The notes below the pieces were generated by a model. The model did not search any database. It was not told the DNA's origin and was given only the letters and a program-made list of their open reading frames with translations. The translations under genes and the position numbers were made by a program. A stretch of 64,000 bases of DNA from Oculina patagonica (lineage: Eukaryota), in NCBI RefSeq assembly GCF_052425735.1, contig NC_135763.1, positions 33,666,001-33,730,000 of the forward strand, written 5' to 3'. This document shows, one piece after another, positions 31,684 through 64,000 of this stretch (positions within the stretch are counted from its first letter, which is position 1; every line of letters begins with the position of its first letter).

Positions 31684-33358
31684 TATCTCTTCTTTCCTCG
31701 TGGAGAATGGGGCCATTTGTCTTTATCCTCCAAGCTATCCTGTCTCTGACTACAACCTCTGCCTCCCCATATGTCCTAAATCCAAGTATTTCCTTTCTTT
31801 ATGTGTTGTTCTTCGCCACGTCTTTCTCGGCCGTCCTCTTCTACGCTTGCCATCGGTGTGCCATGTTAATGCAATCTTGGGATTTTTCTCTAATGACATT
31901 CTTGAATCATACGCCTTGATCTTACTTGCTCATCAATAGCCCTCTTCCCAGATCTTCTCTAATCTCTTCATTACTGACACCAATTAACGTCTAACAAACT
32001 TCTTACAAAGTCCGTAGTCCCTATCAACAACAAAGACGAAGTGTATTGTGCACAGAGGGTCACCTTTACGAGATAGTGCTTTCACGATACCTAGTGCTTT
32101 TGCGAACCGTTTAAGTTGCCTTTGCAGAGCATGAGCAAGCCATTGTCCACAAAGGTCCCCCAATTGACAAGCACCTAGGAGCAACACGCATTGAACCCAG
32201 AGAACCATAGCCTTACCCCTTAATCCCTACCGAAAGTGTGACAGAAAAACTAAACTGAACAATCAAACACAATTTTAACAGAGACAGTCTAACGAACCTT
32301 GATTTTACATTTTGCAGAGTATGTGTTCCACGTCAGCAGAACCGAACCAAAGCCTTCCGCCAGTGTATGCAGTTTTGGACGTTGAAACCACAGGGAAAGA
32401 CAGACAAAAAGGCCGCATCATTCAAATAGGCGTTGTTAAAGTTGAAAATAATGTTGTCACACCATGGATGGCGTATTGCAATCCTTGCAAACCAGTAGAG
32501 GAACAAATGAGCGCTTACAAAGTGCACAAGATATCACCGGAGTTTCTTCAAGGGAAGCCGACATTTGCCGACGTGGCACCGAAACTGTGCAAGTTTTTGG
32601 AAAACGTTGAGTATGTTGCTTGCTATAACTGTACGTTTGACTGGAGTTTATTGATGGCTGAGTTTGAGAGGCTGCAAGGTAATGAAGGCAACAAAGCACT
32701 CATGAGAAAGATAAAGTGGATTGACCTTTTTAGATTTGCGATCAAGTCGTTGCCCGATCTTGAAGATCATAAGTTGTCGACCTTACTAGATAAGTTCTCG
32801 ATACGAATCAAAAAGGGTCAAAGCCTTCTTCATCTTTATCAGTCTTATTTTACGACAGGGGATCAAGAAGACTTTCAAGTGCATTCGGTGTTCGAACAGG
32901 GAGAGAAAGTAAACTGGGACGAGGGACATCATGATGCTGTGTGTGATTCCCTTGCCGCGCATGCACTCCTGAAGAAACTGCTGGAGAAACACAGTTATTC
33001 CAACATCACCGATCTTGTCAATCACTTCCCGCAGTGTATAATTGACACAAAATTGTTTCTCGCTTTGGAAGTGAAATTGAAAGAGAAGAAAACTTCCAAC
33101 AAAGATCTGACGCCTTTTGCTGCACGAGCAGAGAAATTTTATTGTACGATGCCTTCACTAAGAGGGAGGACGCTCGAAGAACTGTCAGTGGAAACTATAG
33201 AAAAAGCACTGATGATTTGGGGGCAGGATGATGAGAGAGTTCGTCTTATATACAGAGCAGCCGTATTGAACAAGGTTAATAATTCACACAAACGTAGAGC
33301 CAATTCACTTTGCAGACTTTGCTCGAGTGTCAGTCCTAAAGAGCCAAAAACAAAATGA
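31194..33358 (+). CDS. DEDDh 3'-5' exonuclease, DnaQ/Pol III epsilon-like
   Basis: Coding exons 31194-31334 (47 codons, phase 0; in-frame TAG upstream) and 32318-33358. ExoI LDVETTG, RIIQIG, VHKIS..FL.GKPTF, ExoII YNCTFD, ExoIII HDAVCD. AATAAA at ~33463; probable 5'UTR exon ending at 29304 (AAG|GTACGT). Confidence 0.88.
31649..31980 (-). mobile_element. 3' fragment of an RTE-clade non-LTR retrotransposon with (ATG)n tail
   Basis: Minus strand reads PKIALTWHTDGKRRRGRPRKTWRRT, the typical C-terminus of RTE-like ORF2, followed by a microsatellite tail at 31649-31682. Confidence 0.75.
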
Positions 33359-36296: not shown

Positions 36297-39200
36297 CTAC
36301 TTCTTGCCGCCTTTTACTGTTGATCCTTGCTTCATACGCAGCAGTTTGTCCAGTACGTCTGCGGTGAAAGGCAGCGCTTTCTCCAGGGCCTGGGACTGGT
36401 TTCTACAAAAGATGCGCCTCAGCCGGATGTCCTTCCTCTCCTGTAAGTACTCGACCAAGTCCTCCTTCTCCAAGGCGCGGCCAAGATCATCTACCAACTG
36501 TGTGACGAAGAAATGCAGGATGCAGCGGGAGACTGTGTCACAGACATTCATTTTCAGCACGTTAAAGCATCGCACTACATTCCTTTTAATATTCTTCATT
36601 TCCTCGAGTTCCTAAATACCAAGAAAATAAACATTTCGTAAGAACGGACTTCGAAACAAAAGTAATTTTGCGGTTACTGATGTGCGGCACATTCTGATTG
36701 GCTCAAGAAATTGATGCTAAATGCATGCACTAGCCAGTCAGAGGAAACCCAAAACATACCAACACCACAAAGTACCAATCCAGCAGGTCTGAGAGGAATT
36801 AGAATGACGTTTGTCGCTTTAGTTCCAATAGACCGTGTAAGGCAAAACTGTGCCATATTATCTTCTGGGAGGGATAACTTTTTCAATAATTTTGGATGGA
36901 TCTGTACTGCTGGACCCACACATGTTCCACACGAAAATAATATAGATATTGCTTTAACGCTCAAGCTAGCTGAACTAGAGAAATACATTTTATGTAAAGA
37001 AGCAATCAAACAGAATAAAACATCATGCCCAGACGAAAACAGGACGTTTTCATGCCATGTAAAATGCTCGAAAGGCTTACACCCTAAACAGCTGCAAGTA
37101 CGTAAGCGTGCAATATGCACCCGTATTGTATGCTTACCTTGTAGTTTAAAAACGCTGTTTGTCCATGGACGTTGCCACGACCTTCAATCTCCTGTACCAT
37201 TTGCTCAGGGTACAGCTTTTTTGCGAGGTCTTTCATGTGACTCATGGTCTTTGACGACATACAGGGATGAAATTTGCCTTCCTTCATTGGGTACGATTCC
37301 CAGAGGTGTATCTCGCCCGGCGTGGGGACTGGTGCAAACACTTGGTCGATACTTTTCTTCTGCATTTCAAGAAACTGTTTGATGAACTGGCTTGTCTGGT
37401 CGCGTTTCGTGTCGAATATTTTGTTCACGACTTTCGCTTCGACTGCTTGTTTGAGGATGGGGAACTTGTCCAAGCTGCACGTGATGGCCCTTTGAACGAT
37501 TTTCCTTAGTGTGGCCTCGACAGTTTTCACAAGGTTCTCCGATATGGGTAGCAACTGATCAACTGGGCTCTGAAATGGAACTTGGCGGCCTTTAGGTGAA
37601 TAACCTATATATAGACGAGATATCGGTCATAAAATAACACACTTACTGACTAAGTTGAATATAAGATTAAAAAGATATTGACCGAATTCATTATAAGATA
37701 AGACATTTACAGACTAAGTAGGTCTTGATAAAAAATTCTCTTACTGAGTCTCACACTCCGGTCCTAACACGATTGCGACCTACTTTACATACATACTGTG
37801 GTTCAATTTACCCTTGATACAATTTAGTAATTTCCTTTGTTCTGGTCTTTGGTGCTATTCAGTGATAATGAATATAGAACAAAGTAAAAATGCCATATAA
37901 CCAATAGAAAAACAGAACCACAACATACAAATCGCATGTTTCAAATGTAAACATCCCTTATGAAGAAATTTGAAGAAAAGGGAATAAAGGTTTTTTTACC
38001 TGTGTATTTCTCGTACAGCAGTTTCTGCAGCAGCTGGCTGTTCTCACTGCTCTCTCCAAGCGGGGCAGTCGCACCCTCCAACTTCTTCTGCCGCCTCCTG
38101 ATATCATCGTCATTACGCATGGCCAGTGGATCCACCTAGACATGACAGACATCATTTATCATAATAACAACTGTTTATAGAGAGGCATAGTGCCTAATTG
38201 TTAGTGCGTCAGACCTCAAATCGAGGAGTCCGATTAACCCTCCCCTCCACCCCTTCCAACCTCCTTGCTAGAGTCTTTGGATTCCCGAAATGGTACTGTA
38301 AATTATAAAAAGAAAGACAAATATAGTACTGGTACTAAGCCTAGTATAGCTGGGTGAGATCCACTTTGCTGGTCGTTTCAAAATAAGTGTACAGTGACGT
38401 TTCAAAATTTGCTCAAACTCATAACAACGCCTCTAAATGGAAAATTTTCATCATTTAACAACACTTCTGCCGCGTTCTCTCGCCTTGTGGCGACCTTCTG
38501 AAAAGGAAAAGGTTGCTAAATCCGAAAGTAACTAGGGTTGTTAGTTCTCTCACCTTGAATACATCTTCGCAGAATGAATTAAACAGCCCCCTCACTTTTT
38601 CTCCTCCTTCGTTGTCGGACGTGTTGTTAAAAAGAAGTTTGTTCAATTCTGTGACGAGTTTATTCTTAAGTTTCATGGCCACTGCACCCTTCCCCCCATC
38701 TGACTCGGGCACCTCGCTGTCCTCAAGTCCTTTTAGCTCATCATCCACCTGTATTCATTGAAAAATAGACGCATTTATTTTTTGTTAGTACTCGTGAACT
38801 CACCAGAGAAGCTTCCGAAGTTTCTCAGTGGCGCATTTTGGACATCGGACAATGTCGGACAGAACGATCCGGGTACGAGCGCTACTTTTGGGCAAGCTAC
38901 CTACCTACCTACCTAACTACCCCCCTAACTTCCTGTGGGACTTGAACAGAATACTGCACCAGGCCCAGAATGCATTGTAGTAGTAGATCAGCAGAGCGAA
39001 GTCTTGTTCGTTTGTTTAGATGGAGATTTACGATTTAGAGCGTAACATTGTTAGTGTTTTGAGCGGTTCTTACACAGTGCTTACTTCAGTTTTTCGTTCT
39101 TTCATTTGTCGCACCAGAATAGGAATCTCCATGATCATTTTTTCGGCCAGTAAAGAGATCATGGTGTCCATCAGCCGATCAATGCCACACACATGTGTGA

Positions 39201-42088
39201 TGTCTTTGTACTGTGGGTGCCTCTCGAACCATTCCTTCTCCTTCATACGGGTCATTTCAGCGTCCCAGTCCCTCTCTTTCGGGTCTGTGCCATCTTTGCC
39301 TGGTTTGTTGATAGAAATCAAGAAAATAATTACTTATTTCCTTTGGTTTAGCCCTACTCGAACCTTATAATTGGCTCAAAGCTAGGATTTAATTTGTGCA
39401 AAGTGCTCTAACCAGTCACAAATTGGTAAGGTATTTAGATATTTATGATAGATATTTTCGAGCAAATGAAAAAACGCTTTTCAAGGTGCAAAATTAATAG
39501 TTTCCTGCGTTTTCCATCCAGACTTAACATGCTTCAGATCGGCTGGAGAGCGAGCGTTGAACGGTCGTCGTCTGGCGAAACAATAATTATAAAAACTTGT
39601 AGCATTCAGATTTAGTAAGCCCATCATTTCTAAGCAAGAACGTGATAAAGTAATCTATATAAAGCTATCTCACAAATTATTGATAAAAATCCTTTCTATA
39701 AAGTACGGATTTAAACTAAACGTCTTACCTCGAAGCAAAATAAAGCGGTTATCCTCCAGTGTAAAGCTGGACTTATTCATAGCCACTCTATACCCCATGT
39801 CATCAGTTTCTCTCAACTTGTCTGGTTTGGTCAGCGCGCAAATGGTACGGCTTTTAAAATCTCTGGCCTTTTGCATGACCAGGTTTATTGCACTGTCACC
39901 TGTGGGGTCCCCTACCTCGGACACAATCACGATGATGCTGTTTGTGTTTTTCTCGATGTACTCTAGCACTAAACTTTGGGTCACGTGGTTCATTCGCGGG
40001 TCGTCATTGGCGAAGTGGGCGCCGGGAAGGTCGACCACGGTGAGAGTCGTGAGTTCGGGGCCTATACAGGTAAAGGGACAGATAGAAACTGAACTTTAAA
40101 ACTGGAGTTGGAGTTGAGCATTTGAACGTCAACAAATTTAGTATAATTTCCAGAGTGGAAATAAGAATCGGACATATTAGCTAGTCAAAAAGCTCGGCTT
40201 ATGAAGCTATATACACCGCGCTTTGGCGCTAGGCGGTGCGCCCGGGGCGCTTACTTCACATTTAGGATAAGACGGGGACGCTTATTCGAGGGGGCGCTGA
40301 TTTAATTTTTCCTAAATCGTGGCCAGGTATGATCGGGTTTTTTTGTAATATTGCATGTGCGCGTAAACAACATTAACTGTATATTTATATAAAAAGCTGA
40401 TCCTAAATGCAAATATGCAAATACATGGATCTGATTTCTGTATTGTAATGATGTAGTCAAGAGCAGTTACCGATGATTTTAAAACAGGCCGGATGAGAGT
40501 GATTAAACACGTTCAAACACATTCATGTTGTCTAAGTTCTCGTCAATAAAAACGGGGGGAGGGGGGTCGCTTCGATAGGAAGGGGCGTTTATTTCAAGGG
40601 GGCGCTTATTCGAAGGGAGGCACTAGTTCGAAGATTTAACTACTTTCGAAAGAAATCACTTCAAGTCCAGAATATTTAAAACATTGAAAATTTGTTTGCC
40701 AAGGCCCTTGGACCAAAAATATCTTCAAGAAATGGTGCTGCACGCATTAGGGCCTGTTTACATGGAAGGCGGGTGCTCCGGATAGCCAGGCTACCCTGGG
40801 CGAGCCAACTTTTCATATTAAAGTTTCTTTTAAAAAAACTCGGTCGGCACTCGGTCTACTTGCCCGAGGCACCCTTCTAGGCAGGATATGTAAACGGATA
40901 TTCCCGGGCTATCCCCGCTTGCCGGGATGAGTCTTCGCGCGTGTTCTAAGATTAAATTTGAAGTTAATGGCATAAAAAATGTATAAATTTGGACCCAAAC
41001 AGTGCTTTTTGACCAAAATTAGATCAAATTAGTTTTATCTGTAAGCTGGAAAATATTTCTTTGAGCAACAGCTAGTTAATTCGAAATTTTCATAGGAATG
41101 ATTATCCTAATTCACGAAACAAATTTAATTTTAATTTGGAGGACAAAGAATGTTGAATTTTAATTGATTTCCCCACAAATGGACACAGTAAATTTCTAAG
41201 AGCTTGCACATCAATGTAAAATACGTATAGATCGCGCACCATGACAAACTGTGTCGGATCGAGTGATCGAAATCTACTTCTCTTCAATCCGGAGCTATAT
41301 ATCGGTTTGAAGACGATACGCACAATTGTTCATAAGTTTCATCAATTCTTTTCCATACAATAAGACCAGTATATATTATATTGAATTTGCTATAATTAGT
41401 TCTAACTAATATAAATCGGTACAGGCAGTGAATTCTTAGACTTCTTTGGGCAACTTGCTAAAATGCTGTGGGGGTAACCGTGCAATGGACTAGCAGGGGA
41501 GAGTAGCAATACTCCTAGTCGCTTCCGTGATGCCATGGAAACCTGAGTTACCACCGCGGCCTGTTGAGCCGGCTCCTCGAATGTAAATAATAAAAATTCC
41601 AAATAAAAACCATTAAATCTAGTTTATTAGCGTAACACCTCACCTTGCAGAGTAACGTTAACTGGGGTTTTTGATATCGGAGTTCCCTCCTCCTTGGGAA
41701 GATGACCAGCAACTTTGTTGAGGAAATCCTCCACTACTTCATCCGTGGGATTTTCCACAGTTCCCGCTATATCCGGCCTTTTATCACATTTCACTTCCAC
41801 CATGCTCTTTGGGCCGTTCCGTAGATTGAGTATTATGGGATACGTGGTGCGTGTTTGAAGGGTGTTGGCAGTTTCATTTCGTCGCATTGGGAGAAGATAT
41901 CGACCAATCAGTCGGTTTATCACCGTTGTCTTTGCCATGTTTTGTCGACCGACCATGACCAAATGCGGAATGTTGAAGGTCTGTCGTAGCGTATCATTGC
42001 TTATCATGGTTTGTATAAAATCCAACACGACTCCAAACTCGCTACTTCTGCCATATTTGGCAACGGGTGTTTCAACTACACCTGACAT
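36297..42088 (-). CDS. Dynamin-superfamily (Mx-like) large GTPase, copy A; 701 aa from its own ATG, probably the C-terminal part of a HEPN-TRADDN fusion
   Basis: Exons 42088-41644, 40061-39729, 39299-39085, 38748-38554, 38135-38000, 37604-37138, 36611-36297, all GT-AG and phase-consistent (2106 nt). G1 IPHLVMVGRQNMAKTT, G3 VDLPG, G4 ALTKPD, EKEWFERHP, GIDRL, GED-like C-terminus; no PH or PRD domain. Confidence 0.9.
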
Positions 42089-42269
42089 GATCTTCGGGCT
42101 CTTCTGCAGTGATCAAAACAAAACATTAGTTATGTAAGGAAATGCCGAGTATCCACAGACAGTTACCAGTCCCACAATTGCTTATCACTGATCGTTAAGA
42201 GGAAATTGACCGCTCAACTGCTAAGGACAAGGCCAACTTAAAAAATAAATATTAAGCAAGCAAGCAAGC

Positions 42270-42482
42270 GGCACATCCACAGTGTTGCTATTCGTCCACT
42301 GTTTCCGGGTCGATTTGGAATTTAGAAGTGTTGGTTTTTGTGGAGGTAAGAAAACCGGACAACCCGGAAAAAACCCTCGGAGCAAGGACGAGAACCAACA
42401 ACAAACTCATATATGACGCAGGGTATGGGAATCGACCCCAGGCCACACTGGTGGGAGGCGAGCGCTCTCACCATTATGCCAT
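42270..42482 (-). mobile_element. tRNA-derived SINE fragment (second family)
   Basis: Minus-strand head TGGCATAATGGTGAGAGCGCTCGCCTCCCACCAGTGTGGCCTGGGGTCGATTCCC (A/B boxes). Confidence 0.65.
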
Positions 42483-42518
42483 CAGCAGTCGTCAGCTGGA
42501 GTAATAGAGTCTGCTTAC

Positions 42519-44975
42519 CAGCTTAGAGATTTCAACTTCTGGGCCAAAACCTGAGGCGGTCCGCTTTCTTGTCATGTATCGTGGACGTTGAACTAAAAAT
42601 ATAGCATTTTGGTAAGAAAAAGATTATTTGTGATGGCTAATCAACGCCCATTGAGGCCTACTTAGGGGATGGGTTCAGCCCCTATGCAGGGCAGGGGTAG
42701 GGAGAGTTCAGGGACTGGACTAACTCTACTCTCACTTTAGACCCCCAACTCGCATAGACTCTCATACGCTCTCACTAAATTTAAAGTTGCTGAAATTTTC
42801 ATGAGTCAACGATAATTTTTCTCGTTTAACCAGCAAATTTGAGTTGTGTTAAAGTTTACAAAAAACCTTTTGGTGATGAGGTCTTTCCTTTCATGAATCC
42901 GTACTCAGGTCCTCATTTTTCGGGGGTGGGGAGAGGGTTGATAATTGTTGTCATGCGTTGACGGCCCGGAGAGCTCTCGTCCAACTTTCATCCCTCAATT
43001 CTTTTTTTCTTGCTCTAGATCGAGTTCTCCTGCAGGAAAACCTATGAAAAGTCTAATTTCTAGGATATAAAATGCAGATTCACCTGCACTTTGCAAGAAA
43101 TACTCTCGACAAGCTTTGTATTCATCCACTCGAATAGTTGTCGCGAGTTTCACTTCGATAGGGCCAAAGGCTTTCAAAATGTCCTTCGTCACAAGGTAGT
43201 TTTGTGCCATTTTATTTAAGTGGCCTGAACAATAGTCTTCCCACAGTCCTTCAAGTATCTCCAGAGTGCTGCATTCCACAGTGATTATCAAGCTCCCTTG
43301 CTGCGCATCCTTGAAAAGAACTTTGCGCACGTCTCTCAGATACTTTAGATAATCATTTAACTCCTCCGGGTTAGATGGGTCGACAATCTGAAAGTACTTC
43401 AGCGCAATGAAATTCAAAACTCCATCTGCAGTTGGGATGCCTTCACTTGTGATATTGTCTCCCGCAAAATCTGCCGGGGCTGATGCTTCCTGCTTCCATG
43501 ATGTGATTGGCATTAATGTGGCGCCCTGAAGTCCTTTTTGTGGTTCTCGTGAGGTTGCTACCAACTCTGAAGATCCTCCTCGTCGACCAGGTACTGTTAC
43601 TGCTTCACAATCGATCCGCAGTCGAAGTTGTACTGTAGAGAAACAAATGTTCTTTTCGTTTTTTATATCCAAGATAACATACTGAAAACTAACACACAAT
43701 CCCGTTCACTTTATTTTTCTATTCTTATTATCTTTAGTTACGAATATCTCTTACATCTGGCAACAAACAAAAATCGCACAAGTAAACGAATCAAAATTTT
43801 GTCCTTGAATTTGCCATTAAATAAGGTACAGCGTAGCACTTACACAAAAGATGAGAAAACTACTTTTACTGCGAAGCCAGCTAACTAACACACAGCCTCG
43901 TTTGCAACCGTTTCCTTGGGACGGCGGATCAAAACCATTTCTCCCTCTTTGTGGGAGGAATGACTTTGTGGCAAGACAAAAACTGCTATAAATTAGTACC
44001 ATTTGAATAACATGGTGAAAGAGTCTACAACAAAGTCGTCATTTTTAACTTACCTCCAGCGGCTTGAGAGCTTCCAGCTATAGATTGATGCACCTCACCG
44101 ATCTTATCCTTGATGTCCTGGGCTTCCTCCCGAACTAGGCATTGGACGTTTTGAGTTGTGGCTTCCAGTTTCCCTCCAAGCTGATCTTTGATACCTTTGG
44201 CTTCCACTCGAACTGCATTCTCTAGGAATTGGCATTTCTCCTCTATTAAATGTGTAGTTCCTTCGAGCCCTCCCTGGACACCTTTTAAACTTGTTTCCAA
44301 ACGTTCCATCCCTTCTTGGGTTGAAGTTTTCAGTTCCACTATGGATTTCTTAACTTCTGTGTCGTTTTCATACCACCTCAGCAGTTCCTGTGTATTTTTT
44401 TCATCCTCAGCAGTCAGTGGATTTCTCAAAAGGTTAATAATAGCAATTTGCCAATCATGTTTCTTTGTAGGGCTGATTTGACCTGCAATCCCAACAAGAG
44501 TATCGCTGATTTCTTTCCAGAGCGATGGAAACTCTTCATTCGTTATCTCCATGTTTTGGTTCACATGACCGTAAACTGAGTTGCGGTAAAATTTAATTCT
44601 CGCTAAATCTGCAGTTAAACTGTGGTCTGTATCTGTTGGTAGAGCATCCCAGCCCGTGGCAGGAGGGGTGAGGTTGCATATTGTTCTCAGCAACTTAAAC
44701 AGTAGCGTAACATCAAATTCTGTTGACTTGCCGTACACCCCTGGGGAAGGGAACAGACAGTCCCACTGTGGCTTGGTGAGCTTTGCTGCTTTGAGTTGTT
44801 TCACTGTGGCTGGATTTTTCAGTATTTTGGGAAGATCGCTTGGTGGACAATTCTGGTCAAAAATCTCCCTCAGCAGCGTGGTGCCTCCACTTATTAACAG
44901 TCGTGTAACGCGATGAAAATTATCTTTTCCATTTGTTGAGCGGAGCACTTTATCTGGTTCCGGGTTGGCGGCCAT
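42519..44975 (-). CDS. DZIP3-type HEPN RNase domain + coiled coil + TRADD-N-like domain (N-terminal module, splices in frame to GTPase copy A)
   Basis: Exon 44975-44054: FDVTLLFKLLRTICNL.PP..GW...P...D.S..ADLARIKFYRNSVYGH, then heptad-rich region. Exon 43632-43084: GSLIITVECSTLEILEGLWEDYCSGHLN...LVT. Exon 42592-42519: 74-nt linker. An in-frame TGA upstream of ATG 44975 fixes the start. Confidence 0.82.
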
Positions 44976-45079
44976 TTCACAAGTCAGAACAGGGTGGAAT
45001 TACGGTATCACTGGAACTCGATACTAAGGAATGGATAAGCTTCACCCGCCCTGTAATAATAATAATTAATATCAATAAC

Positions 45080-45122
<43 letters not shown>

Positions 45123-52177: not shown

Positions 52178-55148
52178 ACAAACTATCCTGTTACTAGCCT
52201 CGTTTTCATTCGTTTGTGCAGCCAAGCGTGTTTTCCAAGAAAGCTGCAAACAGTTTCCGGGTATTTGTTAAAGAGAAGGACAATTGTTTCAACTTTTATA
52301 ATTTAACTGAGTGAAATCGGAAAAGTATAATTGTCTCTTGGCCGAAGAGCATTGCTTTATGCAGTTGGTATTTTCTGGGTTGAGAAGAAGCGCAGGACGA
52401 TTTCGTTTCGGTCGAGCAAGATAAATATTTCATAAGGTTACTAGCTCCGCCGACTAACGAGGTAATTGCAAATGATAATCTTTTAATATAGTTGTCCCAG
52501 GTTGAATTACGGCGTACTCGTTTTTGCAGCCTTTCTCACTTGGTTCGTAACTTCGTAGCCGTTATTCGATGCGACTGAGAATTTCATATTTCTTAGAACT
52601 GGTCAAACTGGATGGTTTATAGGATGACTGATTGGTTTAAAAAAACTCCTACCGCTTTCGGTAACCAATCATGATCGGGTGATGTTTCTAAAGTGATTTT
52701 CCCAACTGCCGGCGGCTACTAGATTTTCGCGCTCTTTAAAAATAACATGTTTAATAATAATATAACACGTTTTCTTCGAGGGAAGCCGACTTTTGCCGAC
52801 GTAGCACCGAAACTGTGCAAGTTCTTGGAAAACGTCGAGTATGCTGCTTGCTATAACTGTACGTCTGACTGGAGTTTATTGATGGCTAAGTTTGATAGAC
52901 TGCAAGGTAATGAAGACAACAAAGCACTCATGAGAAAGATCAAGTGGATTGACCTTTTTAGATTTGCGATCAAGTCGTTGCCCGATCTTGAAGATCATAA
53001 GTTGTCGACCTTACTAGATAAGTTCTCGATACGAATCAAAAAGGGTCAAAGCCTTCTTCATCTTTATCAGTCTTATTTTACGACAGGGGATCAAGAAGAC
53101 TTTCAAGTGCATTCGGTGTTCGAACAGGGAGAGAAAGTAAACTGGGACGAGGGACACCATGATGCTGTGTGTGATTCCCTCGCAGCGCATGCGCTCCTGA
53201 AGAAACTGCTGGAGAAACACAGTTATTCCAACATCACCGATCTTGTCAATCACTTCCCGCAGTGTATAATTGACACAGAATTGTTTCTCGCTTTGGAAGT
53301 GAAATTGAAAGAGAAGAAAACTACCAACAAAGATCTGACGCCTTTTGCTGCACGAGCAGAGAAATTTTATTGTACGATGCCCTCACTAAGAGGGAGGGCG
53401 CTCGAAAAACTGTCAGTGGAAACTATAGAAAAAGCACTGATGATGTGGGGGCAGGATGATGAGAGAGTTCGTCTTATATACAGAGCAGCCGTATTGAACA
53501 AGGTTAATAATTCACACAAACGTAGAGCCAATTCACTTTGCAGACTTTGCCCGAGTGTCAGTCCTAAAGAGCCAAAAACAAAATGAGATCTTGCTTTTGG
53601 ATACGACTATATCTTTCGAAAGTCAGACATTTCAGACATATTATGTCGTTCAATATATATATTACATGTATTATGGCATGGTAAAACCCAATAAAGGAGT
53701 ACTGAAACGTGTTTTAATTACCTGAAAAATATACACGTTTGTTTAATACACGATCAACTTAATGCAGGATAAACGTCAGTGAACTTTCATTTTAATTTTG
53801 GAACTTTTTAGTAGGGTTTTCTTTAAAAATTGTTTCTCAAGTTCAGTTATGTCCGTGACAAATTTCTAGCTCCACAAAAAATAAGCTGTGGACACCCATG
53901 TTTTGCAACTTAATCCGAGTCGTCCTTCGAAACTGGAAACGCATTTTGTCTTTTAGCATTGTAACACTTTCTTCAATCCTCCTTCCGTTTCCCGTTCAGC
54001 GGTCCAGTCCAAAGTTCCAAACTGTCTCGTTTGTCAAAATGGATTAAGCGATTTGTTAACCACCGATTTAAAACGAGAAATGGATAAATGTGATTCAAAA
54101 CGCGAGTCTTGACCATGTTTATTATCGAAGATTAAGCTTAACTGAATCTTTTCTCTGTATCCTGTTTCAAGGAACTTGATTTTCTAGGAAACGGTCATGA
54201 CCCGATTTGAGCTCAGCAATTTCCGTCAATAAAACAAAAGAAAGCTACAAAATATTGATACCGACGCTGTATTCCTAGGGCTTTTCCCTAAACAAGTTGA
54301 ATTGAAGGGAAAAGTCCAGTAATATAGGGGCAGTTTGTATTTTATGAGAACTTTTTCTTGGAGTTTGACTTTCTAGGATTCTGATTTTCTTGGAAATCTT
54401 CACCAACGGTTAGCTATAAATTTACATCATAAGGAGTGACATATATTTCAACTGGAGGAATCAATTTTCAGTCTTTTCTTTACACAACGCATATGGTCAG
54501 TTATTCTGGGAATTCTGACAGTTCAAAGGTCATGTTCAAGGAAAATCGTGACAATCTTTCTTCTAAGGAGGGGTGGGTAAGGCATGTGTCCTGGTACTTC
54601 GATAAAGTATACTGTCAGAAATGGAAAAATAGTTTAAAATAGTTTTTATTTTAAACGAAAGAAATTGAATAAGAAGGCTTATTCATTTCTTTTGTTTATA
54701 TTTTCTTTAACTTGAAGCCTGTTTGAAATCACAAACTATCCTGTTACGTACTAGCCTCGTTTTTATTCATTTGTGCAGTCAAGTGTGACTTTCCAAGAAA
54801 GCTGCAAACAGTTTCCGGGTATATTTCTTTAAAGAGAAGAACAATTGTTTCGACTTTTATAATTTAAATAGCGAAATCGGAAGAAGCATAGATTCTTGGC
54901 CGAAGGGAATTGCTTTATCCTGTTGGGATTTTCTGGATTGAGAAGAAACATTGAACGATTTCGTTTGGACGAAGGACGGTCGAGCAAGATAAATATTTCA
55001 TAAGGTTACTATATCCGCGGACTAACAAGGTAATTGCAAATCTTTATAATTGCCCCAGTTTGAATAACAATGTATTCTTATTCGCAAGCTTTTTCTCTTC
55101 GGTCGTAGCTGGTATTTGATGCGACTCAGTATTTCATATTTCTCAGAA
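52178..55148 (+). repeat. Pair of diverged ~420-bp direct repeats (52178-~52598 and 54731-~55148) bracketing the truncated exonuclease copy
   Basis: Both begin ACAAACTATCCTGTTAC..CTAGCCTCGTTTT and share TTCCAAGAAAGCTGCAAACAGTTTCCGGGTAT and GGTCGAGCAAGATAAATATTTCATAAGGTTACTA. Confidence 0.8.
52771..53586 (+). pseudogene. 5'-truncated duplicate of the DEDDh exonuclease (lacks ExoI)
   Basis: Near-identical to 32543-33358; homology begins at FLRGKPTF; DVETTG is absent; CTFD is changed to CTSD. The duplicated block runs to 54654 (= 34417). An in-frame ATG at 52747 keeps a 279-aa frame open. Confidence 0.8.
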
Positions 55149-56857
55149 ATAGATTAATCGAGTGGTTAATTGGTCAACTGATATTATTGTGTATAAAATC
55201 CTAAATAGACAACTGGTCTGGTTGAAAACATTTAGCTCGATTGCCAGTGGTTTCATCGGCCATGACAAACTATTTATTAGGGGTGAATGAAAATGTTTGT
55301 TTTTAAAAACCTAGAACCTATAGACAAAGGGCTTTCTAGAATATCTATAGGCTGTTTGAGACATTGTTTTGAGGTCAAGAACATTTTGCTCACTTTGAGA
55401 TCCGCATTTTGTTTGAGATTGGCATTTTGGCAACAATAATAACTTGTAAAAGGGTGTTTTACAGGTGCGCAAACTTCGATTCGTATCAGGCACCCAGTTG
55501 TAATAAACCAAAAGAAGGCTAAAAACATTGAGGGAAACCTCGCAGGCAGGCGATCATTCAGTTAGAAGGATCGAGTAGATTTAAAGCAGGTTTCGTTTCA
55601 TATTTCCTTCTTTATACATGGTAATATTAGAGAGATTAAGCATGGCGTTATACGGCAAACGGCAAACGCGAGCTTGCCTTTCATTTTGTTACCATTTTAT
55701 GGAATTCTAAAATTAATCCCTCATAAAAATAGGGGAAAAATCCCACATTCACGACAACCACAAAACTACTCATTTCAGCTTACGAACGCCAAACGGCAGA
55801 TGGCAGAAGTTGAATTTTTGCCGTTTGCGGGAAAAATAAACGTCATGCTTAAGTCGATCGTCTTCCGGTTACGATCGGAAATCACTTTTCTTAGCGATTC
55901 GAATGCACGGCCGGTGAAATATCATTTCTCTATAGACTCTTCTTTATATGAGACGAAAAAAAAAAGGTTAACCAAATTAAAGTCATTAAATATTTTTGGA
56001 ACAGTGTGTTATCCGCATATTTGCAATGGATCAGTGATTTTCAAAGCCGATACAACTACACACCCTATTCCTAAAATATCAAATGATTCCGTCCATGAGT
56101 ACAACAGGGGAATTTTCCCACACCTACACACGGTTGTTTAAAAGAACTCGATGGACAGCGCCTGCATATAGTAGCAAAGACTTGCTGTTAGTGTAACGTA
56201 TCATATCGTTGAAACCAACGAACGACCGAGCGAGTAATTTAAATCACGTGACGACAGCCGAGTAAGTAAAACTTTTCATTGATTCCACGGAGCTTAAAAC
56301 TTTTCATTTCGAAGAAATAGAAATGTCTGAAAGCTAACAAATAGTTAACGAAAAGATTCGGCGTTTAGCATAATATAGCTGGACAACTTTCTCTAGTTGA
56401 ATTTTGTGCATGTGGCGTACAGTAAAAACCCACGAGTAAGGACCTAATTTTTCCATGTTAGCCTAAACAGGTTCCGCCTTATTTTCGACTGTCACCCGTC
56501 CTCTGATTACTGTTTCCATTAGCTTGTAAATCGGCCAAGACCTCTTAAAGCACAGTCACCTAAGTTTCCGTTTGCACACTCCTTGCAGTAACATTGAGTT
56601 AGGCCTTTGTGTATTTCCAGTAATTCCTTACTGTTTGACGGCTGATCCAAAATAACACTGACAAAATCGCGAATTTTAATACACTTTTGCTTTAATGTTT
56701 TTTGCAATCGCGAAAATTAACACTCGCAAAATTCGGCTCCCGAATTTTTGCGAAAGTAAGTACGTGCGAAAATTAGGAAGAATAAGGTAGATCATTCTTA
56801 TGTTTTATTTGTTTGTTTGCTTGTTTGTTTTGATTACTGCAGAAGAGTTTGAAGATC

Positions 56858-59800
56858 ATGTCAGGCGTAGTAGAAACACCTGTTGCAAAATATGGCCGAA
56901 GTAGCGAGTTTGGAGTCGTGTTGGATTTCATTCAAACAATGATAAGCAATGACACTCTACGACAAGAATTCAACATTCCGCATTTGGTCATGGTCGGTCG
57001 TCAAAACATGGCGAAGACAACGCTAATAAACCGACTGATTGGTCGATATCTTCTCCCAATGCGACGAAATGAAACTGCCAACACCCTTCAAGCACGCACT
57101 ACTTATCCCATAATACTCAATCTACGGAACGGCCCAAAGAGCATGGTGGAAGTGAAATGCGATAAAAGGCGGGATATAGGGGGAACTGTGGAAAATCCCA
57201 CGGATGAAGTAGTGGAGGATTTTCTCAACAAAGTTACTGGCCATCTTCCCAAGGAGGAGGGAACTCCGATATCAAAAACCCCTGTTAATGTTACTCTGCA
57301 AGGTGAGGTGTTATGTATAACGGCTAGGTGTTAAGATAAATTGCAAGATTTCTGTAGCATGAATTTGCTAGCACTACTACTCCACTGGATGGGATTCTAG
57401 TAGTCCATTGTAGGTTACCCTCTAACGTTTTTAAATGCCTTTAAGTTGCCCTAAGAAGTCTAAGGATTCGCCATTGCCCATTTATGCACCTGGGCGGAGA
57501 GAGGCACTGTGAAAGTAAAGTGTCTTGCTAAAAAAAAACACATACAAAACACATACAACATAGACAAAAACCTTGGCCAACGCTCCAACCCAGATCTGTG
57601 CCACCACACCTCAAAGTCACGGCGTTTTATGCCGCAAAATCGTGAACTGTAAATGCAAGAAACGTTATGAAACAAAAACCTCTCAAACCCCAGTTCCTAT
57701 TTTAAAGATCGAAGCACGACACAAGCTTCTAAACTCATTCAATAAGTCAAGTTTTAAGGTGGCTAAACACAAAGCTAAGGTACATGTTTCAGGGACATAC
57801 AGCAGGGATAAAGTCACTCGTGTACACACAAGAAAATGCAACAGGGACATGTTGCGGATGGTGCCAATGGGATGAGTCGCTGCAACACCTCCCTGCTACG
57901 TCCCTGCTACATTTTCTTGTGTACACGTTATTTTGTTATTTTCTTGTTGTACACGTTATTTTATCCCTGCTGCATGTTTCTTCGTGTGTCGGCGCTTTAA
58001 TGTTCAACAGGGAGCTTTGTTTCTCTTTTTCTCCAGGCCCCGAACTTACGACCCTCACCTTGGTCGACCTTCCCGGCGCTCACTTCGCCAATGACGACCA
58101 GCGAATGAACCACGTGACCCAAAGTTTGGTGCTGGAGTACATCGAGAAAAACACAAACAGCATCATCGTGATTGTGTCCGAGGTAGGGGACCCCACAGGT
58201 GACAGTGCAATTAACCTTGTCATGCAAAAGGCCAGAGATTTTAAGAGCCGTACTATTTGCGCGCTGACCAAACCAGACAAGTTGAGAGAAAGTGATGACA
58301 TGGGCTATAGAGTTGCAATGAATCAGTCCAGCTTTACTCTGGAGGATAACCGCTTTATTTTGCTTCGAGGTAAGACGTTTAGTTTAAATCCGTACTTGAA
58401 ACAAAGAATTTTCGATCAATACTTTGGGAAATCGCTTTGGATTGTTGTTGTCGTTCCTAACTAGCTAAGCAAATTGCTTGTGCAACTAATTAAAAGATCC
58501 CGAAAACGAACAAAATTGTGGTAGAAACATTACATTCCTAGCGAATAAACGGGCGAACATTTGTTGCGAATGCAAAATTTCAATTTTTGCAAAAAATTTA
58601 GACATAGTTGTTGCTTCTCGGAAGCAAAAAACGCGTCTGTGATAAATGTTGCGTGTTTAATTTGTGCATTTGCGCTTTTCCCATCTCGGGGGACGTAAAA
58701 ACCGAAGAAATCACAGTGAAAATCACAAACAAACCAATCAAAACTCGATGAAAATTCAGGAAAGGCATTGGAAGGAAAGCACGGGAAACAAGGCACCTTG
58801 GTAAACGATACTGCACTTGATTGGTGGAAAATTCGACTTCCTTGATTCCGACAAGCCCTCCGGCCGTCCCTTGTGAGAACATTGTAAGACGCAAGGGATG
58901 ATGGGAAGAATGATGCTGCCTTCCCATCATTCCCATCTGTTCNNNNNNNNNNNNNNNNNNNNNNNNNNNNNNNNNNNNNNNNNNNNNNNNNNNNNNNNNN
59001 NNNNNNNNNNNNNNNNNNNNNNNNNNNNNNNNNNNNNNNNNNNNNNNNNNNNNNNNNNNNNNNNNNNNNNNNNNNNNNNNNNNNNNNNNNNNNNNNNNNN
59101 NNNNNNNNNNNNNNNNNNNNNNNNNNNNNNNNNNNNNNNNNNNNNNNNNNNNNNNNNNNNNNNNNNNNNNNNNNNNNNNNNNNNNNNNNNNNNNNNNNNN
59201 NNNNNNNNNNNNNNNNNNNNNNNNNNNNNNNNNNNNNNNNNNNNNNNNNNNNNNNNNNNNNNNNNNNNNNNNNNNNNNNNNNNNNNNNNNNNNNNNNNNN
59301 NNNNNNNNNNNNNNNNNNNNNNNNNNNNNNNNNNNNNNNNNNNNNNNNNNNNNNNNNNNNNNNNNNNNNNNNNNNNNNNNNNNNNNNNNNNNNNNNNNNN
59401 NNNNNNNNNNNNNNNNNNNNNNNNNNNNNNNNNNNNNNNNNNCCTTGCGCAATATTCTTTTCGTGTCCCACAGATGGTAGGTGGGAAGGTTGGTAGGTGC
59501 GAAGGTACCTGGTAGGTAGGAAGGTAGGTAGGTAGGTAGGTAGGTAGGTAGGTAGGTACGTCGGGTGGGTAGGTAAGTAGGTCCTAAGTACAGTGTAAGG
59601 TCAGGTGGGAAGGTAGGTAGGTAGGTAGGTAGGTAAGTAGGTAGGTAGGTAGGTCCGGTGGGAAGGTAGGTATGTGGGTAGGTAGGTAGGTACGTCGGGT
59701 GGGTAGGTAAGTAGGTCCTAAGTACAGTGTAAGGTCAGGTGGGAAGGTAGGTAGGTAGGTAGGTAGGTAGGTAGGTAGGTCCGGTGGGAAGGTAGGTAGG

Positions 59801-61442
59801 TAGGTAGGTAGGTAGGTAAGTAAGTAGGTAGGTAGGTCAGGTGGGAAGGTAGGTACGTACCCGGATCTTTCGATTCGATGTCCAAAATGCGCCACTAAAA
59901 TACTTCGACAGCTTCTCTTGTGATTTCACAAGTTAGTACTGACAAAAATGAATGCTCTTTTATCCAATCGCTGCAGGTAGATGAAGAGCTAAAAGGACTT
60001 GAGGATAGCGAGGTACCAGAGTCGGATGAGGGAAAGGGGGCAGTGGCCATGAAACTTAAGCAATACCTCATCGGAGATCTGAAGGACCTTCTTTTTAACA
60101 ACACGTCGGATAACGAAGGAGGCGAAAAAGTGAGAGGGCTGTTTAATTCATTTTACGAGGATGTATTCAAGGTGAGAGAACGCGAAATAAGTGTTGTTAA
60201 ATGATGAAATTCTTCCATTTTAAGGCGTTGTTTTGAGTTTGCGCAAATTTTGAAACGTGTAGCTTTCGTATTCTGGTCTTTATTATCGACGAAAAAAGGC
60301 ACGATAAACGTGCACTGTCACGTTGAAGAACTGTTTGAACACAAAATCAAACTTTAAAACAAAAACTGCTCAAACTCGCACGTGCGATACCCTAGCGAAA
60401 ATATCACATGATTTAACAAATAGTCTACAAATCCGGATGTAACGAACCGAATGTAACGCAACCGGGTGTGACAAAATTTACAAAATCCCACTGTACACTT
60501 ATATTGAAACGACCAGCAAAGTGGAACTCACCCCGCTATACTAAAAGTGTTGCAATTGGGACACCCAAGGGAATAGTGCCAAGTGATAAATCCTCTTGGG
60601 CTTTAAATTCATTCAACTCTGTTCAATTTTCCGAGCCCCCTTCCGCCCCTCCCCCATCCCCCCCCCAAAAAAAACAATGTTAAAATATTGTCGCACAGTT
60701 GGATGGATAGAAATCAGCATTGTATTGCGAATGGGAAGGGGGAGGTTAATGCAATGCCATTTTTGTCGAATCGGTTAGGTGTCCCAAGCCTTTTGTCGAG
60801 GATTGTAGTTTAAATACCAGTACTATATTTATCTTTCTCTCTTTGTATTTGACAGTACATTTCAGGAGAGAGTTAGTATATCCCGCCAAAGAGTGCAATA
60901 CAAAGGCCCCAGCCAGGCCAGGGTGTTGGGTGGGATCGGACACCTCGATTTGCAACCTCGTTCCCAGGGTCTCTCTCTCCCCGCCCCTCTTCTCTCGCTC
61001 TGGGGGGCGGGGAGAGAGAGACCCTGGGAACGAGGTTGCTCGATTCGAGGTCTGATGCACTAACAATTAGGCACTGTGCCTTTCTAGAAGAAGTTGTTAT
61101 TATGATAGATAATGTCTGTCATGCCTAGGTGGATCCTCTAGCCATGCGTAATGACGATGATATCAGGAGGCGGCAGAAGAAGTTGGAGGGTGCGACTGCC
61201 CCGCTTGGAGAGAGCAGTGAGAACAGCCAGCTGCTGCAGAAACTGCTGTACGAGAAATACATAGGTACAAATCCTTTATAACTACTCTTCAGATTTCTCC
61301 AAAAGGAATGTTTGCATTTGAAACATGTAATGTGTATGTTGTAGTTCAATTTAAGTCTTGGTTATCTCGTTTTTTACTTTGTTTTATATTCGATTTATTA
61401 TCATAGAGATGGCAACCTCATCCCGCGCCTTGACTGTAATAA

Positions 61443-61497
<55 letters not shown>

Positions 61498-63314: not shown

Positions 63315-64000
63315 CTGTGACATTTTGTTACATTGTAGCCTCATGCTCTTAAGGAAAATGCCTCACTGAAGCCGTTCCTTTGTTTTTTACCCTTAGATTT
63401 TAAGATGTGTTGTTTTTAAATCGTTTGGCAAAGAGACTCTCTAGATTCTAGTACGACATTCACCGGTGCGTGTGTGCGAGCTAGTTTGATTTATTTTTGG
63501 CAGAAAATCAATCTTGCCAACGATAACTGTCGGTAGCAATTCTATATTGCATTAAAATTTATTTTTAAATTTTCGACTATGAATTTACCAAATTCAAGTT
63601 CTCAGTCAATTTAAGCTTAAAGCAATTGTTTAGTTTTTAGTTCAAACAACTTCTAAAAGAATAAAAGAGTTTAGAAACTCAAAGAGTATTTATCAATTGA
63701 GTTCTTTCTCCAAGAAATGATGGGGTCCCTCAGCCCCGGGTGGCTAAGCAACGTAAGGTAATGGCTCATACTGACGTGACATTTCAACTTTATGATTACT
63801 CGTGTTTTATTTTGATTGAAGAATAAGAATGGTGGACCCATCGAAAGCAAACAAATAATAAACAAATCATCTTTATTCTGATCACCCCTCCCACTCTCAA
63901 AGTAATGTAATACTGATAATCAGGGGGCTTATGTGAACACAATTTTTTTTATATTTTTGGGTAAAAATCTAGAGGAGGCAAGTGCCTCGTCTTGCCTCTT

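Follow-up and report, generated by a model that had tools for sequence, protein, structure and literature searches.

A transcribed gene joining a HEPN-TRADD-N head to a dynamin-family GTPase in the coral Oculina patagonica

Gene structure at the locus

The window analyzed here, a 64,000-nt stretch of the O. patagonica genome (GCF_052425735.1, contig NC_135763.1, positions 33,666,001 to 33,730,000), carries on its minus strand a ten-exon gene at 44975-36297, whose coding sequence was rebuilt from the window (Table 1). The model comprises 3666 nt, corresponding to 1221 codons plus the stop codon, with no internal stops, and all introns have GT..AG ends. Exon 1 ends in phase 1, exon 2 runs from phase 1 to phase 1, and the 74-nt exon 3 shifts the phase to 0. 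An acceptor for exon 9 at 37569 was rejected because it broke the frame, which the acceptor at 37604 restores with the total of 3666 nt. The length, the phases and the KSPKI-MSGVVETP join through the 74-nt exon had been proposed in an initial annotation made from the sequence alone, and all of them were reproduced by the rebuilt model. Independently, the public O. patagonica annotation (GCA_052425735.1) holds an equally long product of 1221 aa with a CDS start at 44975 and all five domains described below. In a second assembly, the exon order is identical and the frame is open throughout.

Table 1. Features of the HEPN-GTPase gene (window coordinates)
Feature	Position	Strand	Remarks
Exon 1	44975-44054, 922 nt	-	ATG at 44975; aa 1-307; HEPN followed by a single long helix
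DZIP3-type HEPN domain	aa 45-180, about 44843-44436	-	motif R131-N-S-V-Y-G-H137; PF18738
Long single helix	aa 189-300, about 44411-44076	-	AF2 model; 112 residues
Exon 2	43632-43084, 549 nt	-	aa 308-490; linker followed by TRADD-like N; ends in phase 1
TRADD-like N domain	about 43363-43190	-	Pfam PF20694 match within exon 2
Exon 3	42592-42519, 74 nt	-	phase 1 to 0 adaptor; basic 25-residue linker
Exon 4	42103-41644, 460 nt	-	phase-0 acceptor, 15-nt open leader (KSPKI), ATG 42088, first half of the G domain
P-loop GRQNMAKT	41950-41927	-	within exon 4
Exon 5	40061-39729	-	second half of the G domain; G3 DLPG, G4 TKPD
Exons 6-10	39299-39085, 38748-38554, 38135-38000, 37604-37138, 36611-36297	-	dynamin middle/stalk and GED
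Stop codon TAG	36299-36297	-	end of exon 10

The N-terminal HEPN and TRADD-N head

Profile searches recovered every domain expected from the initial annotation, namely HEPN_DZIP3, TRADD-like_N, Dynamin_N, Dynamin_M and GED. The HEPN_DZIP3 match in Pfam is the strongest (E value 2.4e-42, 144.6 bits; cut-off 27), and none of the 121 aligned homologues, which show about 55-75% identity, departs from R131, N132 or H137 of its Rx4-6H motif. The AF2 model of the HEPN-helix part (pLDDT 81) consists of a helical domain followed by the long helix. When this model was compared by Foldseek with AFDB Swiss-Prot, human and mouse DZIP3 residues 386-587 were matched with a probability of 1.0 and an E value of 2e-5, both structures being predicted ones; the comparison with solved PDB chains, in which the long helix dominated the alignment, gave nothing significant. 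The HEPN domain here is a predicted RNase; a demonstrated RNase activity of any DZIP3-type HEPN was not found in the literature surveyed.

TRADD-like_N (PF20694) was likewise matched above its cut-off (E value 2.4e-9, 37.3 bits against 23.7, profile positions 3-65 of 69), and the public 1221-aa product bears the same PF20694 tag. This part is 54-56% identical to that of P0073, a HEPN-CC-TRADD-N-ubiquitin protein; its AF2 model, derived from a two-sequence alignment, reached a pLDDT of 55, too poor for a fold search. The two-exon head consisting of a DZIP3-type HEPN, a long helix and TRADD-N is very common in O. patagonica and other corals, and exon 1 has 1059 homologues.

The dynamin-family GTPase part

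Dynamin_N was matched with an E value of 4e-4 on exon 4 alone and 2.8e-4 on exon 5 (profile positions 101-167). These single-exon scores, 20.8 and 21.4 bits, lie below the cut-off of 27 because the domain is split over two exons, and PF00350 is carried by the whole public product as well as by P0166, a 701-aa protein (PF00350, PF01031, PF02212) with 94% identity to the GTPase part. Dynamin_M was matched on exon 6 (5.3e-8, 32.8 bits) and exon 9 (2.3e-7, 30.8 bits; cut-off 28.5), and GED on exon 10 (2e-8, 34.7 bits; cut-off 21.4). The G3 and G4 motifs are present, while the G1 motif has Ala at a Gly position of GxxxxGK[ST], so that GTP binding may be atypical. Against three paralogues, the GTPase part showed dN/dS values of 0.13-0.14, indicating that it is under purifying selection and has not decayed; the paralogues are only about 0.2 apart in dS.

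A phmmer search of the PDB gave matches to a fungal dynamin (2e-15), MxA (about 1e-12), dynamin-3 (1e-12), and Drp1 and Vps1 (4e-12). Because the distances to dynamin, Mx, Drp1 and Vps1 are nearly equal, an assignment to Mx is not specifically supported, and "Mx1-like" is an automatic name. Thus, of the dynamin/Mx GTPase originally proposed, the dynamin-family part is supported, the Mx part not specifically so.

The 74-nt exon and the joint to the GTPase

Exon 3 encodes VQRPRYMTRKRTASGFGPEVEISKL. Skipping it would put the GTPase out of frame and stop the product after 500 aa, and retention of intron 2 would give a HEPN-CC-TRADD-N product of 519 aa, as computed from the sequence. A search of the rest of the window and of L001 gave no second copy of exon 3, including the surroundings of the other paralogues, and its single difference in the second assembly is synonymous. 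The phase-0 acceptor with its open 15-nt leader just upstream of the ATG is common to all four GTPase paralogues, and the unarmed ones, which lack the head, use the ATG equivalent to 42088. RefSeq also starts the neighboring paralogue there. That neighboring paralogue is itself annotated with an exon captured from another gene, which suggests that the open acceptor eases the formation of chimeras. Intron 3 contains a high-copy repeat, for which tRNA and Rfam origins were checked, both with negative results.

Transcription of the fusion

Examination of seven RNA runs (X1-X7) revealed that the HEPN-GTPase fusion is transcribed. A 387-nt contig of X1 (organism A, study P1; depth 6.5) and a 308-nt contig of X6 (organism B, study P2; depth 10.5) each join exon 2, the 74 nt of exon 3 and 38 nt of exon 4, with GT..AG ends on the gene strand. 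The junctions 43084>42592 and 42519>42103, by which the initial annotation had proposed to check the model, are therefore both present in X1 and X6. The opposing arrangement, in which all HEPN transcripts would end at about 42995 and the GTPase would be transcribed separately, fails on the existence of these contigs. The upstream joint 44054>43632 was found in X1, X2, X4 and X5, and in X6 and X7, there with a single variant base at the splice point; the joint between exons 4 and 5 (41643/4>40060/1) was present in X4-X7. No single read or contig in the RNA runs spans the whole mRNA.

The depth across exons 2, 3 and 4 was similar to that across exons 1 and 2 (6.5 vs 8.5 in X1 and 10.5 vs 17.8 in X6), and introns 1 and 2 had a depth of about zero in six of the seven runs. 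No contig in which exon 2 runs on into intron 2 was seen in six of the seven runs, and a direct joint between exons 2 and 4 is not among the listed joints; X7 contains a low-depth contig within intron 2 (42831-42994, depth 3.4). The depth over exons 4-5 was two to three times that of the contigs joining exons 2, 3 and 4 (17.1 vs 6.5 in X1 and 29.5 vs 10.5 in X6), and the exon 4-5 contigs end exactly at the k-1 overlap, at 42066-42095. Other transcripts therefore enter exon 4 from another upstream exon, and this entry belongs either to an unarmed isoform or to paralogues. The reading of 95%-identical exon 4 RNA contigs as transcripts of the plus-strand paralogue was ruled out for X1, whose exon 4 contig carries the letters of the armed locus of the second assembly at 19 of 19 listed variants, four of which differ from the paralogue letters.

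Relatives and known systems

A homologue search reached stepwise through P0001 and then P0163 (706 aa) covered annotated coral relatives of 388-1235 aa, a set in which the product of the window itself is not listed. No other HEPN-armed relative of the GTPase was found among them. The annotated coral relatives are unarmed proteins of 585-732 aa, with the exception of the adjacent 894-aa G023526 model, which came up only as a member of a cluster. The fusion was found in Oculina-type sequence only, and because the other coral relatives are unarmed, it looks Oculina-specific and, judged from the sequences compared, seems confined to one coral genus. A HMMER search with exon 4 gave 33 matches, nearly all of them single-exon ORF fragments that are uninformative on architecture, and a literature search on coral Mx-like GTPases gave nothing relevant.

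The closest relatives of aa 521-1221 are scleractinian GTPases of about 700 aa named "Mx1-like" or "dynamin-related" (ACROYT_G023527, which is P0166, and proteins of Acropora, Montipora, Porites and Desmophyllum), with 66-94% identity. They share with the fusion the exon structure, GRQNMAKT, DLPG, TKPD, and the middle and GED regions, but begin at the counterpart of ATG 42088 and lack the HEPN/TRADD-N head. With Mx, dynamin, Drp1 and Vps1 (3szr, 4p4t, 6fgz, 5a3f, 4bej), which are distant and about equally close (E values of 1e-15 to 1e-12), the fusion has in common the G domain, the stalk (middle) and the GED, and it lacks a PH domain, as do Mx, Drp1 and Vps1. It differs from all of these in its non-canonical P-loop, its extended switch I and its N-terminal predicted nuclease/adaptor head.

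The head itself has a published template. Kaur et al. (2021, eLife, PMC8195603; Kaur, Iyer, Burroughs, Aravind) catalogued "HEPN+Coiled-coil+TRADD-N+X" proteins of marine invertebrates, in which the partners represented by X include an AIG GTPase, a RIG-I-like helicase, ZU5-UPA, Macro/PARP and ubiquitin. These proteins, of the DEDD2/TRADD-like clade, agree with the fusion in the order of the head and in having a variable C-terminal module, and the large lineage-specific cnidarian expansion described there is shared by the O. patagonica head; the partner here is instead a dynamin-family GTPase of the classical type, bearing Dynamin_N, Dynamin_M and GED. The source data of the same study list TRADD-N with "Dynamin-like_sGTPase" for Stylophora PFX23674.1 and Branchiostoma XP_002592322.1. 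As far as the listed architectures alone allow a comparison, this coral and this amphioxus protein resemble the fusion in that a single polypeptide carries TRADD-N on the N-terminal side of a dynamin-like GTPase, but they lack HEPN and carry vWA or CARD+TIR and kinase domains. The examined portion of the table has no row with HEPN plus dynamin, and the main text does not contain the word "dynamin". The cnidarian HEPN(DZIP3)-NACHT/NB-ARC NLR-like receptors (Emery et al., 2021, PMC8260672; Noel et al., 2023, PMC10236652) also place an N-terminal DZIP3-type HEPN on an oligomerizing NTPase and have expanded greatly in corals, whereas the fusion has a dynamin-family GTPase in place of the STAND ATPase and bears no repeat-type sensor domain. 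The initial suggestion that the architecture had not been described must thus be narrowed: the head template and TRADD-N-dynamin-like fusions were on record and the product was already annotated. Measured against the examined part of this literature, the GTPase is a new partner for an already catalogued head, and what seems to lack a precedent is only the combination of the HEPN head and a Dynamin_N/M/GED GTPase.

Interpretation of the fusion

We favor, with moderate confidence, the view that the locus is one expressed ten-exon gene, a lineage-specific product of exon shuffling that encodes a putative innate-immune sensor-effector acting by GTPase assembly. In it, the phase-adapting 74-nt exon links a two-exon HEPN-helix-TRADD-N head to one copy of a dynamin-family GTPase of scleractinians. 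The G domain, stalk and GED would let the protein self-assemble, in a nucleotide-dependent manner, on its target, which is probably a virus-derived structure or a membrane, and this assembly would concentrate the N-terminal heads, so that HEPN domains may pair into an active RNase and/or TRADD-N domains may recruit downstream adaptors, with RNA degradation or cell-death signaling as the presumed outcome. The 112-residue helix could, alternatively, dimerize the HEPN domains constitutively, with no input from the GTPase.

The joint function itself may be questioned, as the gene could be a young chimera that arose when an inverted GTPase duplicate came to lie downstream of a HEPN-CC-TRADD-N gene and a fortuitous 74-nt exon connected the two, the result being neutral or transient. 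The restriction to Oculina-type sequence among coral relatives that are unarmed (save the adjacent G023526), the low dS between GTPase paralogues, the lack of any homologue of exon 3 in the sequences searched (the window and L001) and the captured exon of the neighboring paralogue all fit such an origin. We nevertheless regard it as unlikely, given that both assemblies preserve the open frame with only a synonymous difference in exon 3, the spliced form occurs under two organism labels at a depth near that of the HEPN exons, and the GTPase half is undecayed; moreover, the same head occurs on many other sensor-type modules, GTPases included, a pattern that speaks for selection of such combinations. 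Still less probable, in our estimation, is that the locus has two main products, a short HEPN-CC-TRADD-N protein (519 or 500 aa) and a headless GTPase of 701 aa translated from ATG 42088 behind another upstream exon, with the full fusion as a minor read-through isoform. Both short forms can be computed from the sequence, and the excess depth over exons 4-5, the contig break at 42066-42095, the intron-2 contig of X7 and the RefSeq start of the neighboring paralogue are in line with this arrangement. On the other hand, exon 2 was not seen to continue into intron 2 in six runs or to join exon 4 directly among the listed joints, the contigs joining exons 2, 3 and 4 are of the same order of depth as those of exons 1 and 2, and the extra exon 4 depth can stem from paralogues that share k-mers.

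A further possibility accepts the fusion and reverses the roles of its parts, with HEPN as an RNA-binding or sensing module and the GTPase as the effector, which would remodel membranes or capsids or act by sequestration. Dynamin and Mx proteins act as effectors themselves, and DZIP3/hRUL138, whose own domain is the best structural match of the HEPN model, is mainly known as an RNA-binding protein. Coral genome papers likewise speak of an "RNA-binding DZIP3-like HEPN". Against this, R131, N132 and H137 show no change at all across the 121 paralogues, as expected of catalytic residues; a survey of HEPN domains, which it treats as RNases, found the Rx4-6H motif mostly conserved in the DZIP3 family; and the published template places the head at the effector position. 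These points make the reversed assignment rather improbable.

Returning to the sensor-effector reading, it can be extended to an animal "abortive-infection-like" device, in which the polymerization of a dynamin/Mx-type GTPase on a viral structure turns on the attached HEPN RNase and/or TRADD-N death signaling, the open phase-0 acceptor serving as a docking site for head swapping. We put this forward as a speculative proposal, more doubtful than the sensor-effector reading itself; if true, Mx-style recognition would be physically coupled to a nuclease effector. Mx/dynamin-like GTPases are usually viewed as restricting viruses by assembling on them, and the step from assembly to damage is debated. 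A natural predicted RNase and death-pathway adaptor on such a GTPase would offer a testable model of assembly-triggered effector activation. The weight of the finding is limited in that it apparently concerns one coral genus, its template was known from the literature, the public annotation already contains the gene and the function of the protein is a prediction. Within these bounds, the dynamin family joins the NTPase switches bearing the HEPN-TRADD-N head, beside STAND and AIG, and the locus shows a route by which such genes originate: where an intron in the 5'UTR has a phase-0 acceptor followed by an open leader, upstream coding exons can be captured.

Gene model and domain organization

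We read minus-strand positions 45200-36000, joined and translated the proposed exons by script, and so reassembled the armed gene, in which a HEPN/TRADD-N head precedes a dynamin-family GTPase, as ten exons (E1-E10) at 44975-36297, with E9 starting at 37604. The exons sum to 3666 nt and encode 1221 residues followed by TAG with no internal stop, and all nine introns start with GT and end with AG. E1 (922 nt) ends in phase 1, E2 (549 nt) runs from phase 1 to 1, and E3 (74 nt) from phase 1 to 0. Fifteen nucleotides separate the acceptor at 42103 from the ATG at 42088, and the joint reads KSPKI-MSGVVETP. The exons, phases, open frame and in-frame joint of the initial annotation were exact to the base. 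Because Oculina patagonica chromosome CM126640.1 (GCA_052425735.1), from which the window comes, contains a minus-strand gene with a 1221-residue product and the same CDS start (44975), that annotation reproduces an existing model, deposited as a hypothetical protein, whose precomputed Pfam domains are HEPN_DZIP3, TRADD-like_N, Dynamin_N, Dynamin_M and GED. RNA contigs extend to 45051, and the 5'UTR is immediately preceded by an (ATT)n microsatellite.

Features of the armed gene and its surroundings
Feature	Location	Strand	Basis
HEPN_DZIP3	exon 1, aa 45-180	-	Pfam 2.4e-42
TRADD-like_N	exon 2	-	Pfam 2.4e-9, 37.3 bits, cut-off 23.7
E3, 74-nt exon	42592-42519	-	sequence read
Dynamin_N halves	exons 4 and 5	-	Pfam, each below cut-off alone
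G1 motif GRQNMAKT	41927-41950	-
Dynamin_M	exons 6 and 9	-	Pfam above cut-off
GED	exon 10	-	Pfam 2e-8
ACROYT_G023526 (P0192, 894 aa), head-to-head paralogue	52747-63332	+	submitter annotation
Exonuclease-like ORF (279 aa)	52747-53586	+
Last exon of DnaQ-like gene at ~31.2-33.4 kb	32543-33355	+
(ATT)n microsatellite	45052-45110
Very high-copy repeat, intron 3	42300-42535
Very high-copy repeats, intron 4	40736-41280; 41460-41640
N run	58943-59442

A Pfam scan, done exon by exon in frame, recovered every domain proposed earlier: HEPN, TRADD-like N, Dynamin_N/M and GED. The weakness of each Dynamin_N half is due to the division of this domain between exons 4 and 5. When exon 1 was aligned with 120 homologues, R131, N132 and H137 of the RNSVYGH motif were invariant. 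An AlphaFold model of exon 1 (pLDDT 81, 44-sequence alignment) contained a helical domain at residues 7-184 followed by a single unbroken 112-residue helix (189-300). Foldseek found no significant match to this model among solved structures and, in AFDB Swiss-Prot, matched it to residues 386-587 of human and mouse DZIP3 with probability 1.0. The TRADD-N part was modeled at a pLDDT of only 55. The linker encoded by the 74-nt exon includes RKRTAS, which we take to fit the basophilic-kinase consensus RxRxxS.

For the GTPase part, P0166 (ACROYT_G023527, 701 aa), which shares 94% identity with aa 521-1221, served as a proxy. Among solved structures, its closest relatives were a fungal dynamin (2e-15) and MxA (~1e-12), followed by dynamin-3, Drp1 and Vps1. 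This part is a dynamin-family GTPase without a PH domain; of the earlier dynamin/Mx assignment, Mx is not specifically supported. G3 (DLPG) and G4 (TKPD) are canonical, and G1 has Ala at the second Gly of GxxxxGK[ST]. All relatives seen, from Acropora to Porites, share the G1 motif and the extended switch-I region after it; the non-canonical P-loop is characteristic of the family and does not mark the armed copy as defective. The Ala may change nucleotide handling.

Transcription of the fusion

Seven sequencing runs were RNA-like, with exons covered, spliced joints present, and introns 1 and 2 at zero or near-zero depth. Both joints that define the fusion, 43084>42592 and 42519>42103, were present in two of them, as predicted. 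In X1 (organism A, study P1), a 387-nt contig consisted of 43358-43084, the entire 74-nt exon and 42103-42066, and the same path, starting at 43279, was taken by a 308-nt contig in X6 (organism B, study P2); the two skipped stretches have GT..AG ends on the strand of the armed gene. The E1>E2 joint was found in X1, X2, X4 and X5, and in X6 and X7 with one variant base at the junction; E4>E5 was seen in X4-X7. The fusion mRNA exists.

The E4-E5 contigs begin at 42095, and the E2/E3/E4 contigs reach only 38 nt into E4; the two sets overlap by exactly 30 nt, the length that a branch in a k=31 assembly graph would produce. Together with the greater depth of the E4-E5 contigs (17.1 vs 6.5 in X1; 29.5 vs 10.5 in X6), this branch indicates that other transcripts enter E4 from a different upstream exon, and these could come from the paralogues or from an unarmed isoform, that is, the GTPase without its head. 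The E4-E5 contigs, only 95% identical to the window, were also considered as paralogue RNA, and this was rejected: all 19 listed X1 variants match the letters of L003 (GCA_044670265.1), a second assembly of the armed locus, and the X1 contig is therefore the locus' own allele. The only hint of a short isoform was a 164-nt contig of depth 3.4 in X7, lying in intron 2 (42831-42994, minus strand) directly downstream of the stop of the 519-aa HEPN-CC-TRADD-N product that intron retention would give; it could represent a minor short isoform or unspliced RNA.

Sequence exchange and relatives

L003 and the window are 98.2% identical overall at the armed locus, and the frame is intact in both assemblies. 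Identity is 99.7% in E1 and 99.6% in E2 vs only 94.5% in E4, and E3 carries one synonymous change; thus E4 (41644-42103 vs L003 11288-11743) differs by 5.5% and E1-E3 by 0.3-1.3%. At 18 of the 25 E4 differences the assemblies differ by letters of the plus-strand paralogue, a pattern that points to likely exchange of E4 sequence with the paralogues through a gene-conversion tract among the clustered GTPase genes.

Four paralogues lie together here: the minus-strand armed gene and, after it, the plus-strand genes G023526, G023527 and G023528. Between the armed GTPase part and the other three, pairwise dN/dS is 0.13-0.14 (dS 0.21-0.31), which indicates constraint; sequence comparison shows a constrained GTPase half and, in the HEPN domain, conserved catalytic-type residues. 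Identity is 82% to the Desmophyllum GTPase vs 94% within the cluster, placing the duplications after the split from Desmophyllum. Approximately 25 annotated full-length GTPase relatives from Acropora, Montipora, Porites, Oculina, Desmophyllum, Pocillopora and Stylophora all begin at the equivalent ATG and measure 585-732 aa. The single longer model is the adjacent G023526, which came to light solely through its membership of the P0174 cluster. In a search up to 1235 aa, no other HEPN-armed GTPase relative was found, and this form is apparently confined to Oculina. Exon 1 had 1059 homologues within the length range searched, chiefly coral ORFs, among them P0073, in which the same head is carried on ubiquitin.

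In all four copies the ATG is preceded by a polypyrimidine tract, a CTGCAG acceptor and 15 nt of leader without a stop codon. As read from these elements, the acceptor belongs to an ancestral 5'UTR intron, through which any phase-0 coding exon lying upstream can be captured. In the armed gene, as in P0073, the phase at the end of the head is 1; the 74-nt exon shifts this to phase 0, and skipping it would give a 500-aa product. The armed gene illustrates how exons can be captured at a pre-adapted acceptor.

Cnidarian TRADD-N domains are known with an N-terminal HEPN and variable C-terminal modules, and also in fusion with AIG and GBP GTPases (Kaur et al., 2021; PMC8195603); the source data of that work list TRADD-N joined to dynamin-like GTPases as well. 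The word "dynamin" does not occur in the main text of that study, and the examined portion of its table has no HEPN-plus-dynamin row. The armed gene has the same head and differs in its C-terminal partner, a dynamin-family GTPase. Of the initial proposal of an undescribed architecture, only the pairing of the HEPN head with this partner appears to be new; the template was published and the gene model already annotated. The feature is real, and is a variant of a published architectural template. A HEPN survey describes the DZIP3 family as mostly conserved in its motif and as fused to NACHT, CARD or Death domains, and two papers describe large HEPN_DZIP3-NACHT expansions in corals (PMC8260672; PMC10236652).

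Proposed mechanism

We found no demonstrated RNase activity of any DZIP3-type HEPN in the studies consulted. In HEPN RNases, active sites form across the dimer, and dynamin-family proteins undergo nucleotide-dependent self-assembly through stalk and G-domain contacts. By analogy with these two properties, the heads would be drawn close to one another as the GTPase part assembles, which would turn on RNA cleavage and/or TRADD-N signaling. The predicted 112-residue helix may already dimerize the heads. The gene product, a dynamin-like GTPase armed with a putative effector, lends itself to experimental testing.

Neighboring paralogue and repeats

The annotated N-terminus of G023526 comprises an exonuclease-like ORF (52882-53538) and two 60-nt exons (54377-54436 and 54970-55029), spliced to the same type of acceptor at 56842/3 with the reading KSLKI-MSGVVETP. 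RefSeq XP_078374496.1 (644 aa) begins at the ATG, unlike this 894-aa submitter model, which may be a real second armed form or an annotation chimera. The 279-aa ORF duplicates the last exon of the DnaQ-like gene at 95.6% identity and has weak Pfam matches to RNase_H_2 (3e-4) and RNase_T; within the G023526 model the copy would be without the N-terminal exonuclease motifs. For the paralogue, no equivalent of exon 6 (39299-39085) could be matched within the window; this exon probably sits in the N run, which both public models span with a short unrelated stretch (…LLRVSTDKNECSFIQSLQVDE…). ARAGORN and Rfam found nothing at 42200-42620, around the intron-3 repeat. In RNA runs the summed contig depth of the high-copy repeats reaches 10^3-10^4, compared with ~5x10^5 in X9, a DNA-like run.
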